Sequence record: NC_041878.1
Strand: one strand, 5' to 3'
DNA: 64,000 bases
Shown here: piece by piece, positions 1 to 9,326 of the stretch
How positions within the stretch are numbered: position 1 is the stretch's first letter
Layout: each line of letters begins with the position of its first letter
Notes under the pieces: model-generated
Told to the model about the DNA's origin: nothing
The model's database searches: none
What the model saw: the letters and a program-made list of their open reading frames with translations, nothing else
Program-made: the position numbers and the translations under genes

Positions 1-293
1 TATCCGTTCCTGAAGTCGAATGCGAATAGCACAAAAAGTACAGCAACCTTTTTTCAAAAATGATAACATGAGGTTGGGAAAAATCTGGAGTGATCGTGAA
101 ATCAAATACGAATCAAGGAAATTTTGGAGTACCCTTCAGACTTTTTCTGAGATCTCGAAAGTACACCAAAGTAAAGACGCATCGTAGAAATTACGTTCAA
201 TACTATAATACAAATACAAAGTACTGAAAATTTATACAGTACTGTTATTATGCACAGTGCAATATAAATTTTAAAATCAGATGAAAAAAGTAC

Positions 294-322
294 TTGACGA
301 GGGATGATGGAATTGATACTAT
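294..322 (+). promoter_or_regulatory. sigma70-type promoter, no ORF downstream
   Basis: TTGACG(294-299)-17 bp-TACTAT(317-322), preceded by AAAAAGTAC. Confidence 0.75.
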
Positions 323-328
323 AGCTAC

Positions 329-440
329 AAGTTAAGGAGACAGGCAACGGTCAAGCCTCTCAGCCACGTAGCCTGGAACCTTAACAGTACTGCAATGATG
401 GTTGCCCCCTGATTTGCAGTCCTCTTACCAGAGGTGTTCT
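329..440 (+). ncRNA. candidate structured small RNA A
   Basis: Follows promoter. Stems GTTAAGG/CCTTAAC (331/379), CAGGC/GCCTG, ACTGCAA/TTGCAGT (389/414), CCTCT/AGAGG; no ORF. Confidence 0.5.
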
Positions 441-660
441 CTTCATTGCTTAGGAAACATTAAGTACTAAGCGTGTTAAAAATTTGAAGTACTTTATAGT
501 ACTATGCAGTGTACATTCTACTAAGTCATCCTGCCAATAACTTTTGAATGTATAGTGCTAGTACTATATCTTTTTAAGTGAGAATATTAGTACTGTATAA
601 GTACTGATGAATTACCAAAGTACAGATACAATGAGGGTATATGTTGTCTGAATTTTGGGT

Positions 661-810
661 GTACTATCCCTATCTGCTATCTTCAGATGGATAGACTTCT
701 GGCGGTGTAGATGGCTGGATGTTTAAACGTCTAGACTGCTATCCTTCTGGATGGCTAAAAGGCTAGATGGCTATCCGTATAGATGGATAGACGTTTAGAC
801 GGCTAAATGA
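661..810. repeat. degenerate GATGG(A/C)T / CTATC repeat array
   Basis: AGATGGATAGAC at 685 and 781; GATGGCT at 710, 750, 766; several CTATC copies. Confidence 0.6.
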
Positions 811-899
811 TTTTTTCTGTCAAAATTCCATTAGCTCCCCTTCCGCGACTGGATAGAACCAGGCAGAATCGAAAGTCGTCTTTTCGTGTTGACAGGGAT

Positions 900-927
900 A
901 TAATACCACACTGAAAAACAATTGCAA
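900..927 (-). promoter_or_regulatory. leftward sigma70-type promoter
   Basis: Minus strand TTGCAA-16 bp-TATTAT with TG extension. Confidence 0.5.
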
Positions 928-989
928 GGGATTTTTTGCAGAAAAATAAATTTGACAAGTGAACCAGGATTATAGTACTATATAAGCAA

Positions 990-1023
990 GCCAGAGAAAT
1001 GGCCTAGCCCACAGGGTGCGGAG
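990..1023 (+). ncRNA. two-hairpin element copy 1
   Basis: GCC-AGAGAAAT-GGC-CTA-GCCC-ACA-GGGT-GCGGAG after TTGACA(952)/TACTAT(976). Confidence 0.7.
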
Positions 1024-1060
1024 ATCCGTCTATTGCTTTTTATTTGAATTTTGGACACAA

Positions 1061-1094
1061 TTCCGCACCCTGTGGGTCAAGGAGTTTCGCCTCC
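1061..1094 (-). ncRNA. two-hairpin element copy 2 (convergent with copy 1)
   Basis: GGAG-GCGAAA-CTCC-TTG-ACCC-ACA-GGGT-GCGGAA after minus-strand TTGCAT-17-CATAAT (1132-1104). Confidence 0.7.
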
Positions 1095-1160
1095 ATGTAA
1101 AGTATTATGCCAGTACTGCGAACATAATGCAAGGACTTTTTACGATTTTCTTTAAAAAAG

Positions 1161-1302
1161 TTTCCCCTTCTATATACGTATAAAGGAAGCGTTTAGAGCG
1201 TGTCAGATCCTGGGGCTTACAGTTTTGTACTTTATACTTTATAAAGCCGTGTAAAGCGTCCTATGCGTTCCTTGTACGTGTATACGTATATAGAGAAGGA
1301 AA
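1161..1302. repeat. large imperfect palindrome
   Basis: Perfect 13 bp IR CTATATACGTATA (1170-1182)/TATACGTATATAG (1281-1293) with imperfect flanks. Confidence 0.65.
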
Positions 1303-1476
1303 AGCCTGTTAGAAAGAATCTTATAAAAACTTATATAAAGTACTTGCAAAGGTTTTTTGGTGTGATAGTATTAATCCCGTCGAACAGGACAACGCTCTTT
1401 AAAAACTTGCTGGTGAATACTTAAACATGCCTCCAGGTACTTTGAAAAAAGAATCTGAGAGAATGAAAAAGTACTT

Positions 1477-1505
1477 GACAGCAAGAATAGAAAGTGTAGA
1501 ATGTT
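1477..1505 (+). promoter_or_regulatory. sigma70-type promoter
   Basis: AAAAAGTAC-TTGACA-17 bp-TAGAAT. Confidence 0.75.
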
Positions 1506-1511
1506 CAATAT

Positions 1512-1648
1512 CGAAAGGCGGTAAGGTTCGCCGGATGGTAGGAAGCGGTAGCAGGGCGATAAAGTACTGCTACAGTGATAAGCCGGAAGTGCTATCACAG
1601 CGTTATAAAGGTTAACATAACTGTTAACGTCCTATCTACTGCCTTTTG
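1512..1648 (+). ncRNA. candidate multibranched small RNA B
   Basis: Closing stem AAAGGCGGTA/CTACTGCCTTT; hairpins GTAGCAG/CTGCTAC, GTGATA/TATCAC, GTTAAC/GTTAAC; follows promoter. Confidence 0.55.
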
Positions 1649-1799
1649 ATTCTTTCAGTACGGTAAAAGGTACGAAAGAATAAAGATTCAGAAAGTTATC
1701 AAAAAGTACTTGACGGACTGAATCGCACGATGTAAGATGTTAAGTAAGCCGAGTGGCTAACCCAAAATTCAAAATTTAACTTTTAAGAAGGTATATATC

Positions 1800-2477
1800 A
1801 TGACTACTACTAACAACGCTAAAGCTACCAAAGTTACCCTGAACTCTATCGTTTTCGCTCCGGCTCCGGTACTGCGTGAACTGAAAGAAGGTGAAAACTA
1901 CACCAAAACCGAACTGAAAGCCCACGAAAAAGAAATGGGCGAATATCTCCGCACCACGTCGCACGATTTGGCGATGTACCTGGTAAACAAAACCGACAAT
2001 ACTGATACCATTGTCAAACTGTTTGCCGCTACCGCCGAAGCGATCCCTACAGTACTGGCCGAAGTACTGAAACAGCGTGAAGAAGAAGAAGCCGCTAAAC
2101 AGGCTGAACGCGAAAAAGCGGAAGAAGAAAAACGTCGCCTCGCTGAACAGGAAGAAAAAGAACTGCAAGCGAAGAAAGATGAAATGCTTAAACACATGAC
2201 CGATGTTCTGGGGCTGGATCTGGATGTTGCGAAAGCTGCGGTTGAAACGGTGGCGAAAAAGCTGAACGTTGGCAACCATACTAAAAACTCTTATGAGCGT
2301 GTAACCTGCACCATTGAAGGCAATCAGTACGATGTTCCGGTGCGTGGTAATATGTCTCAGGCACTGAAAGATCTGGCGGCGAAATATGGTTTCGCTGATG
2401 ACCGCGATGGATTCATCGAAAAATTCCGCGATGAACCTGCAACTGCTGATGCTGACAAAGATACCGCCGAAGCGTAA
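1800..2477 (+). CDS. coiled-coil protein with H-NS-like C-terminal half (putative nucleoid-associated protein)
   Basis: Promoter TTGACG..TAAGAT, SD AAGAAGG, host-like highly expressed codons (CTG/GAA/AAA/CGT); by-eye similarity to H-NS. Confidence 0.55.
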   Translation: MTTTNNAKATKVTLNSIVFAPAPVLRELKEGENYTKTELKAHEKEMGEYLRTTSHDLAMYLVNKTDNTDTIVKLFAATAEAIPTVLAEVLKQREEEEAAKQAEREKAEEEKRRLAEQEEKELQAKKDEMLKHMTDVLGLDLDVAKAAVETVAKKLNVGNHTKNSYERVTCTIEGNQYDVPVRGNMSQALKDLAAKYGFADDRDGFIEKFRDEPATADADKDTAEA

Positions 2478-2497
2478 TATCAAAAGTAATGCGGCAA

Positions 2498-2515
2498 GGG
2501 GGCTAGAAAGCCCCC
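2498..2515 (+). terminator. GC hairpin after first gene
   Basis: GGGGGCT-AGAA-AGCCCCC; weak U-tract. Confidence 0.5.
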
Positions 2516-2626
2516 TGAGCCTTTCTAACAGTACTGTAATACCTTTCCTCAAAGTACTATTAGAAACGCTTAGAATCAATCCTACAGCGTTTTAAGATGT
2601 ATACTTATTAAGTGAGAATAAACGCT

Positions 2627-2896
2627 ATGGAACTAAAACCACTTTCTGAACTCCGCGATAAAAAAACCATTGTCGCCAGGACAATGATCCACACTTCCCC
2701 ACGTCAAAAGGTTTTATCTGGCTATCTGGTTTTTGTGCTGGATGGTAAACTAATACAACGTCGGATCTATGATATGGCCTATAATAGTACTTTTATGAGT
2801 GCTATGTATATAGTTTACAAAGGCGTTAACTATGCCGTAGATCTTGCATGTAAGACGATTAGCGGGGCTTTCAGCGTCGAAACGTTGAAAGTATAA
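2627..2896 (+). CDS. hypothetical protein
   Basis: ORF; ATG at 2627 after GTGAGA. Confidence 0.7.
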   Translation: MELKPLSELRDKKTIVARTMIHTSPRQKVLSGYLVFVLDGKLIQRRIYDMAYNSTFMSAMYIVYKGVNYAVDLACKTISGAFSVETLKV

Positions 2897-2907
2897 GCCT
2901 ACAATCA

Positions 2908-2937
2908 AAAGCCCTTAGAAACGTTTCTAGGGGCTTT
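2908..2937. terminator. intrinsic terminator
   Basis: AAAGCCCTTAGAAAC/GTTTCTAGGGGCTTT hairpin. Confidence 0.7.
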
Positions 2938-3031
2938 ATATTTGATTTTAAAAAGTACTAAGAAAGTACTTGCAATTTATTTTTGAATCTGTAGAATACT
3001 CGTTATTGAAACACGTAACGAGATTTAAGAA

Positions 3032-3316
3032 ATGCAAGTAACACTGAACGGATTTACTTTTACAAAGAATGTTGATGGTACTGATAACATTCAGTCAGTA
3101 CTTAAAAACAAAGATAATAAAGCATTAGGCGGGATTGTCAAAGATGCTAAGAAGATGGCAAACTTACAACGCCTGAAACGTTCGCCTGATGTTCTGGTAT
3201 TCCTGGCTAAAGTACAGGAAGAAACTGAAAAAGTTTACTTTGAACAAAAGAAACCAAAACCTTACAATAAGTACAAAAGGAAATTTAATCCTTGCATTCA
3301 TTCTATAAATGTGTAG
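3032..3316 (+). CDS. hypothetical basic protein
   Basis: ORF behind TTGCAA..TAGAAT promoter. Confidence 0.75.
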   Translation: MQVTLNGFTFTKNVDGTDNIQSVLKNKDNKALGGIVKDAKKMANLQRLKRSPDVLVFLAKVQEETEKVYFEQKKPKPYNKYKRKFNPCIHSINV

Positions 3317-3741: not shown

Positions 3742-3799
3742 AAATCTTTACAAAAAAGAGGTTGACTTCGGTTGGCCTCTTATAGTACTATATTAATAA

Positions 3800-3833
3800 G
3801 CCAGAACAAAGGCGTGACCCACAGGGTGCGGAG
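3800..3833 (+). ncRNA. two-hairpin element copy 3
   Basis: GCC-AGAACAAA-GGC-GTG-ACCC-ACA-GGGT-GCGGAG after TTGACT promoter embedded in a terminator hairpin. Confidence 0.7.
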
Positions 3834-4947: not shown

Positions 4948-5023
4948 TTAAATTGTATATAGTACTTGCAAAATTCTGCGAGTACTATATAATTACTTAT
5001 ATCTTAAACGGGAGAACAAAGAA

Positions 5024-5479: not shown

Positions 5480-5559
5480 AATTATTATCAAAAGTACTTG
5501 CAAAATGAATGCGAGTACTTTATAATAAAGTTACATTATTAATCAAGAGGAAGTAACAA

Positions 5560-5685: not shown

Positions 5686-5757
5686 TTAAAAATAGTACTT
5701 GCATTAATTTGTGAGTACTATATAATTACTTATATCGAAACAGCGGAGTAACTTGCA

Positions 5758-9122: not shown

Positions 9123-9326
9123 ATGGCACAGAAAGATCGTCGTTATGCTATCGCTGCTGAGTTCACTGGTCACGCTTCTGGTAAGAAACGTTTTGTACTG
9201 CGTTTTGAAGGTACTCGCGTATCCGATCATGGTTCCCGTTATGAAGCGGAACAGGAGATCGCGAAGTACAAGAAAGCGGGTACTATCCCTAACGTGAATG
9301 GTTCACGTTTGCTGGTGGAGGCGTAA
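9123..9326 (+). CDS. hypothetical protein
   Basis: ORF with host-like codons. Confidence 0.75.
   Translation: MAQKDRRYAIAAEFTGHASGKKRFVLRFEGTRVSDHGSRYEAEQEIAKYKKAGTIPNVNGSRLLVEA

Follow-up and report, generated by a model that had tools for sequence, protein, structure and literature searches.

Phages and plasmids generally face the silencing of AT-rich foreign DNA by proteins of the H-NS type. The phage answers to it that are known to us are either small inhibitors unrelated to H-NS, such as T7 gp5.5, T4 Arn and LUZ24 Mip, which are binders or mimics and not H-NS homologues, or easily recognized copies of H-NS or Lsr2. Here, a gene of a different kind is described, CBB_3, which is located near the genome end of Pectobacterium phage vB_PcaM_CBB (KU574722). 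This Rak2-like jumbo myovirus belongs to the genus Mimasvirus and has a genome of 378 kb with a GC content of 36%. The stretch of DNA analyzed, hereafter referred to as the window, comprises the first 64 kb of this genome (64,000 nucleotides of record NC_041878.1). The product of CBB_3 is very probably homologous to H-NS over residues 115–206, and the gene is proposed, with a probability of roughly one-half for the whole chain of argument, to encode a Ler-like anti-silencing or “own chromatin” protein.

H-NS and StpA of Enterobacterales (PF00816 and PF22470) share with CBB_3 an arrangement in which a long helix leads into a helix-turn-helix with a G-[IL]-D motif, followed by a linker and a C-terminal β-hairpin, loop and two helices; a core consisting of Gly, Gly, Gly and Phe-Leu/Ile is conserved in register, and CBB_3, like these proteins, is acidic and has expression signals and codon usage that imply a very high copy number. 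Unlike H-NS, CBB_3 has the loop P-V-R-G-N-M-S in place of T-G-Q-G-R-T-P, with Asn at the position of Arg114 and without Trp109, as well as a linker that is less basic and predicted to be helical, and 114 N-terminal residues that are unrelated in sequence and make this part ~70 residues longer; it falls outside PF00816/PF22470 and is carried by lytic jumbo phages. MvaT, MvaU and Pmr of Pseudomonas (PF22055; PDB 2MXE and 2MXF) have, like CBB_3, Gly-Asn in the loop, and in MvaT a Lys likewise follows in the helix (L-K-D in CBB_3, L-K-E with K105 in MvaT). In contrast, the loop of MvaT is shorter than that of CBB_3, which has the H-NS length, the N-terminal architectures differ, and the profile–profile similarity is not significant. 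In the MvaT loop, K-G-G-N-H, N100 superposes on H-NS R114, silencing is lost in the N100A and K105A mutants, R80, which precedes strand 1, forms the second arm of an “AT-pincer,” and domains of this type prefer flexible TpA steps (PMC4466236). Ler resembles CBB_3 in being a horizontally carried H-NS relative in which a coiled coil is retained together with a C-terminal domain of the H-NS type whose loop is changed, and it relieves H-NS silencing by itself binding AT-rich DNA (PMC7074111). Unlike CBB_3, Ler retains the loop arginine and recognition by the H-NS family, and it is a low-abundance regulator of specific operons, whereas CBB_3 is, by its signals, a massively expressed first phage gene. 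T7 gp5.5, T4 Arn and MotB and LUZ24 Mip, as well as two phage-encoded homologues of H-NS or Lsr2, EPV1 H-NS and CgpS, are early phage answers to xenogeneic silencing of AT-rich phage DNA, which is the role proposed for CBB_3. Recognizable H-NS genes are present in EPV1 and some other phages (PMC7074111; PMC8501957). CBB_3 is much more diverged than these known phage homologues and, unlike truncated H-NS antagonists of the H-NST type, CBB_3 and all of its relatives keep a conserved C-terminal domain.

The open reading frame (ORF) at positions 1800–2477 of the plus strand, 225 codons counted from the ATG, is a 100% match to the coding sequence (CDS) CBB_3, which is labeled “hypothetical protein” in GenBank. 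The Pfam, HHpred and InterPro columns for CBB_3 are empty in the table of the paper describing CBB, and the protein is not among the virion proteins in the mass-spectrometry table of this phage. The initial annotation of the sequence regarded it as the first gene; it is the first conserved gene, and two small unconserved ORFs, CBB_1 and CBB_2, are annotated upstream of it. Because CBB_3 lies inside the annotated 22,456-bp terminal repeat, each packaged genome contains two copies (PMC5259590).

The resemblance to H-NS, originally proposed from a by-eye alignment of three blocks, was evaluated by profile–profile comparison using hhalign. The H-NS alignment consisted of E. coli hns, its enterobacterial orthologues and eight diverged plasmid paralogues; the narrow family alignment contained 21 close relatives of CBB_3, and the wide phage family alignment, built after an exhaustive search of 1.84 billion proteins with a family hidden Markov model (HMM; residues 120–214), contained 35 sequences. 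With the narrow family, the match to H-NS had a probability of 80.5% (E = 1.3e-5) and, in a local rerun, a probability of 66.6% and a score of 35.8, compared with 12.8 ± 2.3 (maximum 21.8) for 300 column shuffles. With the wide family, used as a profile of 34 sequences, the probability was 93.2% (E = 2.9e-7) and the score 48.7 over 85 columns, ~18 standard deviations above the shuffled controls (120 column shuffles, 11.4 ± 2.0, maximum 16.9). This alignment pairs CBB_3 residues 115–206 with H-NS residues 46–133, spanning the central dimerization site (site 2), the linker and the DNA-binding domain, and its score rises with the diversity of the family (from 35.8 to 48.7), as would be expected of true homology. 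The C-terminal domain by itself (CBB_3 160–212 against H-NS 88–136) scored 21.8, compared with 8.8 ± 1.9 after shuffling. Near-invariant residues of the phage family fall on invariant positions of H-NS (G174/G104, G183/G113, G197/G127, F205/F133, I206/L134 and K190/K120), and five of the seven nearly invariant positions in the C-terminal domain (G174, G183, G197, F205 and I206) match H-NS-invariant ones; in residues 115–158, M129, L130, G138, D140, L141 and A144 are conserved. The second block of the by-eye alignment (EMLKHMTDVLGLDLD against EMLIADGIDPN) and the third, which covers the C-terminal domain, thus recur in the same register in hhalign, well above shuffles, whereas the first (VLAEVLKQREEEE... 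against LEVVVNERREEE...) obtained a probability of 0.6% and is not supported. The caution raised at the time, that part of the similarity might reflect E/K/A compositional bias, is borne out for this first block, which is a compositionally biased stretch. No site 1 homology to H-NS was found by hhalign with residues 1–100 (probability 0.6%), nor any Pfam hit in this part. An extra N-terminal part does exist; it adds ~70 residues (114 where H-NS has 45), not ~80 as first estimated.

The strongest homology is found at site 2 (CBB_3 112–158 against H-NS 40–88), which scored 29.7 compared with 7.0 ± 1.7 after shuffling, with a probability of 92.8%. This raises the question of whether, in line with the first option of the initial annotation, CBB_3 might bind host H-NS or StpA through its site-2-like part and, as its N-terminus is without the H-NS head-to-head contact, cap or disorder their filaments, acting as a dominant negative by protein contact and not by competition for DNA. 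The lack of site 1 similarity in the N-terminal 100 residues and a predicted high expression suited to a stoichiometric antagonist are in keeping with such a filament poison, and truncated H-NS proteins with the oligomerization domain are known dominant negatives (PMC7074111). The site 2 identity to H-NS, however, is only ~19%, a conserved C-terminal domain with near-invariant Gly-Asn, Lys, Gly and Phe-Ile would be needless in a pure protein-binding poison, and the hosts of these phages are as unlike as Enterobacterales and Xanthomonas, all of which make this explanation doubtful.

Structure prediction was consistent with the alignments. The AlphaFold2 (AF2) model of the full-length protein (predicted local distance difference test, pLDDT, 69) contains a helix at residues 68–135, a helix at 141–159, a β-hairpin, a loop and two helices. 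Because the long helix dominates this model, the C-terminal domain was also modeled alone; with a 43-sequence alignment, residues 158–213 gave a pLDDT of 80 and the same elements, namely strands at 167–172 and 175–180, a loop at 181–186 and helices at 187–195 and 202–209. As modeled, the C-terminal fold is of H-NS topology. None of the Foldseek E-values for this model was significant. Judged by geometry, the C-terminal domain of MvaT (2MXE) was the only full-domain match with a template modeling (TM) score above 0.5 among the top 50 PDB matches listed (TM 0.53, root-mean-square deviation, rmsd, 3.5 Å), and the match with the best geometry among the AlphaFold DB clusters (TM 0.59, probability 0.82) carries an H-NS-like annotation. 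The comparison with the H-NS/MvaT fold that the initial annotation had called for therefore did return matches and did not refute its proposal, each structural score being weak when taken singly. Such scores are expected for a domain of 50 residues, and they appear to converge, weakly, on one superfamily. In a language-model search with the whole of CBB_3, 86 of the 100 nearest clusters carry Histone_HNS, Histone_HNS_N or MvaT_DBD, with scores of 0.54–0.72, in a range (below 0.9) that the tool rates as leads only; with residues 1–90, the first match was a Histone_HNS_N cluster, a lead with a score of just 0.49.

Some matches were discarded in the course of these searches. The Foldseek matches of the full-length model were noise, and ZapA and designed proteins, which gave the best Foldseek E-values for the C-terminal domain, superpose poorly on it (rmsd 7–10 Å, TM ~0.3). 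RNF8, MAT1 and CCDC47, retrieved by direct searches, are chance coiled-coil matches. Proteins with Flg_new (PF09479) repeats, with E-values down to 1e-14, have 3–11 weak stretches each, which add up over the β-hairpin pattern Y-x-V-x-x-x-x-G and do not indicate homology.

At the DNA-contact loop, the initial annotation had noted that the QGR minor-groove motif of H-NS reads RGN. The register is confirmed by hhalign, in which the loop P180-V-R-G-N-M-S186 is aligned with H-NS T110-G-Q-G-R-T-P116 and R182-G183-N184 with Q112-G113-R114. Within the wide family, G183 never changes and N184 hardly ever does, and position 182 varies (R, K, S, T, E, H and others). Through H-NS R114 and K120, we infer that the phage-family Gly-Asn and K190 are the counterparts of G99-N100 and K105 of MvaT, an indirect route that is taken because the direct hhalign comparison is not significant and the control comparison of H-NS with MvaT fails. 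R167 comes near the position of MvaT R80 solely in the non-significant alignment, and K108 is without an equivalent. PF22055 (MvaT_DBD) is not among the Pfam families listed (top 25 for family members). From the conservation pattern, the altered loop is more likely to be a different solution for reading DNA than a dead one.

Besides the lead-only rating of the language-model scores, several results weigh against an H-NS-type function. PF00816 and PF22470 were not among the Pfam families listed (top 25; E ≤ 10 for CBB_3 and 20 close relatives, E ≤ 1 for the 35 wider members), no H-NS-family match to CBB_3 was obtained in PDB sequence searches with the single sequence or a profile, BLASTP gave no alignment between CBB_3 and E. 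coli H-NS, and the exhaustive search with the family HMM did not reach canonical H-NS. In the loop, the minor-groove arginine of H-NS (R114) is replaced by Asn, and the conserved Trp109 is absent. The hhalign comparison of the CBB_3 family with 45 MvaT-family sequences scored 18.5, compared with 11.9 ± 2.7 after shuffling (probability 1.4%), and places N184 one residue off N100; the control alignment of H-NS with MvaT was likewise blind. Finally, the C-terminal domain has a net charge of −2, the pI of the protein is 5.0 and, compared with H-NS, the linker is far less basic, so that DNA binding could be weak or lost. In PHROGs, CBB_3 matches phrog_20181 alone, a family of no known function. As it falls short of the PF00816 threshold and is devoid of the Q/RGR arginine and the tryptophan, CBB_3 is, on its sequence, a phage-specific branch of the H-NS/MvaT superfamily and not a member of the H-NS family proper; the description “H-NS-like” stands as remote homology over residues 115–206.

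These negative results could also be read as indicating that there is no functional relation to H-NS, and that a small, common fold of a β-hairpin and helices is carried on a coiled coil for some other role, e.g., DNA-end protection, RNA polymerase binding or scaffolding. It would then be unsurprising that none of the sequence-to-profile or Foldseek matches is significant, that the C-terminal domain is acidic and lacks the key arginine, and that the family profile also catches the unrelated Flg_new repeats, the β-hairpin pattern being one that matches easily. This view is quite unlikely, given that the match to H-NS is co-linear over 85 columns and two modules, grows from 35.8 to 48.7 and stands 10–18 standard deviations above shuffles, that three structure libraries and the language-model search independently indicate the same superfamily, and that a natural fusion with a DNA methyltransferase-like domain (P0158, described below) exists.

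The proposal of an abundant anti-silencing protein also draws on the expression signals of CBB_3, for which the expectations of the initial annotation were upheld throughout. The GC content is 0.47–0.48 across the gene, compared with 0.35–0.40 on both flanks. The codon adaptation index (CAI), with weights from 30 E. coli MG1655 genes for ribosomal proteins, elongation factors and RpoA, is 0.69, the highest of the 114 plus-strand ORFs in the window (mean 0.385, standard deviation 0.093, z 3.3) and above that of E. coli hns (0.66); 15 of the 19 Leu codons are CTG. The same highly expressed E. coli-type codon usage is seen in five homologues (CAI 0.50–0.70, compared with 0.27–0.48 for neighboring genes). 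The strong promoter that had been noted upstream was located (Table 1), and its −35 and −10 elements, the upstream A-tract and the CTTTTAAGAAGG ribosome-binding region are all conserved across the six phages compared (CBB, GAP32, Serratia BF, Yersinia fHe-Yen9-03, Xanthomonas XbC2 and Erwinia Kaldavass), the CBB_3-family proteins of which are just 38–70% identical. The translation-initiation region presumably resembles the leader of T7 gene 10. Within the 1.8-kb leader, AAGTACTTGAC is found at two more places, 288 and 1469, in both cases accompanied by a −10 element and directed toward CBB_3. RpoD-like promoters preceded by a UP-like element have been described (PMC5259590). On the basis of the conserved promoter, ribosome-binding region and codons, CBB_3 therefore appears to be suited to immediate expression at a very high level by host machinery in its unmodified state.

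A stem-loop at 1746–1760 (AGCC, a 4-nt loop and GGCT) lies a few nucleotides past the predicted transcription start of CBB_3; its stem is kept in CBB, GAP32, Serratia BF and Yersinia Yen9-03, and the loop varies. It may be an mRNA-stabilizing 5′-terminal hairpin. The second-highest CAI in the window, 0.66, belongs to CBB_23 (9123–9326, 67 aa; GC 0.485), which is likewise a candidate early protein with very high expression.

The family is distributed widely among jumbo phages. A tblastn search with CBB_3 retrieved Mimasvirus and Eneladusvirus phages, and a search with a diverged family member retrieved 55 phage records, including Salmonella phages Munch, 7t3, SE_PL and PHA46, Klebsiella phage fENko-Kae01, E. 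coli phage EJP2 and 121Q/PBECO4-like coliphages; counted together, over 55 Rak2-like phage records bear the family, the hosts being Escherichia, Salmonella, Klebsiella, Erwinia, Pectobacterium, Yersinia, Serratia, Cronobacter and Xanthomonas. In records that begin at the corresponding genome end, the gene starts 1.1–1.8 kb from this end, and where repeats are annotated it is usually within the direct terminal repeat, with which the listed two-copy records are consistent. A conserved 89-aa gene comes next in all six loci fetched. On metagenomic contigs, family members are found in arrays of small same-strand genes, an arrangement that is typical of the early regions of phages. One of the metagenomic proteins, P0158 (386 aa; L017:588–1748, contig SRR26961863_1175929), consists of a DNA-methyltransferase-like N-terminus, with an NPPF motif, fused to a coiled coil and C-terminal module of the CBB_3 type; the N-terminus matches phrog_799 (E = 1e-13) and also phrog_5172, the C-terminal module matches phrog_20181 (E = 3e-15), and the fusion is an indirect hint that this module is tied to DNA. 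A tblastn search with E. coli H-NS yielded no genuine phage record among 50,697, from which it follows that the CBB_3 family is far more diverged than known phage H-NS genes, and searches of the literature turned up no description of an H-NS-like protein for Rak2-like phages. A further metagenomic contig with a diverged family member contains two 197-aa genes ~750 bp apart (L018:698–1291 and L018:2047–2640), which may be tandem paralogues.

The protein could conceivably serve as a silencer owned by the phage, repressing AT-rich host loci such as defense islands or CRISPR-Cas, or holding back middle and late phage genes or superinfecting DNA until a later switch. The retention of both an oligomerization module and a DNA-binding-type domain would suit this function, about half of the members with a recorded taxon are viral in one Atlas cluster carrying PF00816, and phage homologues of H-NS or Lsr2 for which such roles are proposed exist, e.g., the EPV1 H-NS (PMC7074111). 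It is nevertheless unlikely: a lytic jumbo phage with a GC content of 36% would itself be the best target of its own silencer, and nothing ties CBB_3 to specific host loci.

The preferred reading, that CBB_3 counteracts silencing in a Ler-like manner, can be laid out as the following sequence of events. Owing to the terminal repeat, whichever genome end enters first would carry CBB_3, and the host σ70 RNA polymerase would transcribe it upon entry, using as many as three promoters in tandem. Through its strong translation signals and optimal codons, the gene would then yield the protein at the very high copy number typical of architectural DNA-binding proteins. CBB_3 is envisaged to self-associate via its long coiled coil and the site-2-like helix-turn-helix, and its Gly-Asn loop to contact the minor groove of AT-rich DNA in a manner similar to the MvaT “AT-pincer,” and not by the Q/RGR hook of H-NS, with K190 taking the place of MvaT K105. 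The GC content of the host cell is ~51%, and the entry of a genome of 36% GC into such a cell makes host H-NS/StpA the obvious antagonist. By coating the phage genome, CBB_3 filaments would keep H-NS/StpA from silencing early transcription, as with Ler, and the coat may also shield the phage DNA.

The features of the locus are summarized in Table 1. The hairpin following CBB_3 was not called by the terminator scan and was read from the sequence by eye; it is possibly a weak terminator or an mRNA stabilizer. CBB_4 shares the terminator of CBB_3, and codon adaptation is low in its homologues (~0.3). It could be a functional partner of CBB_3; a role as an Hha-like partner is unsupported, as CBB_4 has no Pfam hit and its sequence looks β-rich by eye. 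No Pfam hits were obtained for CBB_2, 5, 6, 9, 10 and 11.

Table 1. Features at the CBB_3 locus, in coordinates of the window.
Feature	Position	Strand	Description
Distal early-type promoter	288..322	+	AAGTACTTGAC; TTGACG-17-TACTAT; oriented toward CBB_3
Second upstream promoter	1469..1502	+	AAGTACTTGACA-16-TAGAAT; 11/12 consensus positions
A-rich UP-element-like stretch	1678..1709	+	ends in AAAAAGTAC; conserved in six phages
Proximal σ70-type promoter	1710..1738	+	−35 TTGACG, 17-nt spacer, −10 TAAGAT
Translation-initiation region	1779..1799	+	CTTTTAAGAAGG...ATG, including the AAGAAGG ribosome-binding region; conserved in six phages
CBB_3 CDS	1800..2477	+	225 aa, 25.2 kDa, pI 5.0; stop codon counted in
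Residues 1–114	1800..2141	+	conserved K-V-T-L-N-S motif, helices, then E/K/A-rich coiled coil; similarity to H-NS site 1 undetected by sequence
Residues 115–158	2142..2273	+	end of long helix, turn, next helix; probably homologous to H-NS central dimerization site 2 and linker
Residues 160–212	2277..2435	+	predicted H-NS/MvaT-like C-terminal domain: β-hairpin, loop, two helices
Loop codons R182-G183-N184	2343..2351	+	in register with H-NS Q112-G113-R114
GC-rich hairpin	2497..2514	+	7-bp stem, 4-nt loop; 20 nt past the CBB_3 stop; no clear T-run
CBB_4	2627..2896	+	89 aa; next gene after CBB_3 in the six phages examined
Intrinsic terminator	2908..2937	+	ends the CBB_3–CBB_4 unit; terminator scan

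The leader contains further repeated elements. Short repeats in direct orientation, with the pattern (A)GATGG(A/C)TA(G/T)AC, are clustered at 660–810, in non-coding sequence near the genome end; they look iteron-like and could form a binding array for a terminase, replication or end-protection protein. A long near-perfect inverted repeat (CCCACAGGGTGCGGA ... TCCGCACCCTGTGGG) is found at 1002–1085, and this element recurs downstream of CBB_6, where a similar CCCACAGGGTG is present near 3790–3830. A search of Rfam over positions 1–3200 returned chance miRNA matches below threshold only, including one at the 1002–1085 repeat.

The palindrome AGTACT is present in 309 copies in the window (e.g., at 220, 238 and 289), compared with 18.5 ± 4.4 expected from dinucleotide-preserving shuffles, a ~17-fold excess; its density is 21–29 per 4 kb in the terminal-repeat part (the first 24 kb being denser) and 11–21 beyond. 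Two copies occur in an intergenic promoter-like element composed of AGTACTTGCAA (−35-like), ~9 nt and GAGTACTATATAAT (−10-like), which is found at 4961–5000, 5493–5535, 5694–5735 and other intergenic sites, with the copies of a pair 21–22 bp apart; the histogram of pair spacings peaks at 21 bp (10 pairs). A second promoter class, AAGTACTTGAC, has 28 matches in the window (at most one mismatch), compared with 1.8 expected. As 73% of the AGTACT copies are inside ORFs, promoters explain part of the excess and not all of it. Phages usually avoid palindromes, and an excess in spite of this suggests that the motif is a signal for modification, recognition or packaging. The initial annotation had suggested that CBB_3 might be the reader of AGTACT. 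In addition to the abundance of the motif, its central TpA step, which MvaT-type domains favor (PMC4466236), could be cited for a sequence-specific reader. Domains of the H-NS/MvaT type, however, read the shape of the minor groove and not 6-bp palindromes (PMC4466236), many copies lie within promoter elements (in AAGTACTTGAC at −35, or as pairs 21 bp apart flanking −35/−10), and nothing ties CBB_3 to the motif; the suggestion is thus extremely improbable. A bolder extension of the favored model, in which Rak2-like phages would build a chromatin of their own, with CBB_3 as the earliest product of either terminal repeat, the Gly-Asn loop reading the TpA-centered AGTACT and a coat polymerizing from these sites, excluding H-NS and hiding the DNA from nucleases, is very unlikely.

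CBB_3 very probably represents an unrecognized, strongly diverged relative of H-NS, and it is present across an entire lineage of lytic phages of very large size. The CBB_3-type gene comes first among the conserved genes at the genome end in the six close relatives examined, and it appears to be built for maximal expression. On the reading preferred here, the family phrog_20181, to date a collection of “hypothetical proteins,” would gain a name and a testable function, and it would offer a natural experiment on the H-NS DNA-contact loop, in which a change from Q/RGR to x-G-N seems to converge on MvaT. To our knowledge, Rak2-like jumbo phages have no chimallin nucleus, and the model offers a way in which the AT-rich DNA of jumbo phages that lack a protein nucleus may be protected and activated during the first minutes after infection. 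The H-NS status of the host might also affect host range, a point of possible importance when these phages are used against plant and food pathogens.

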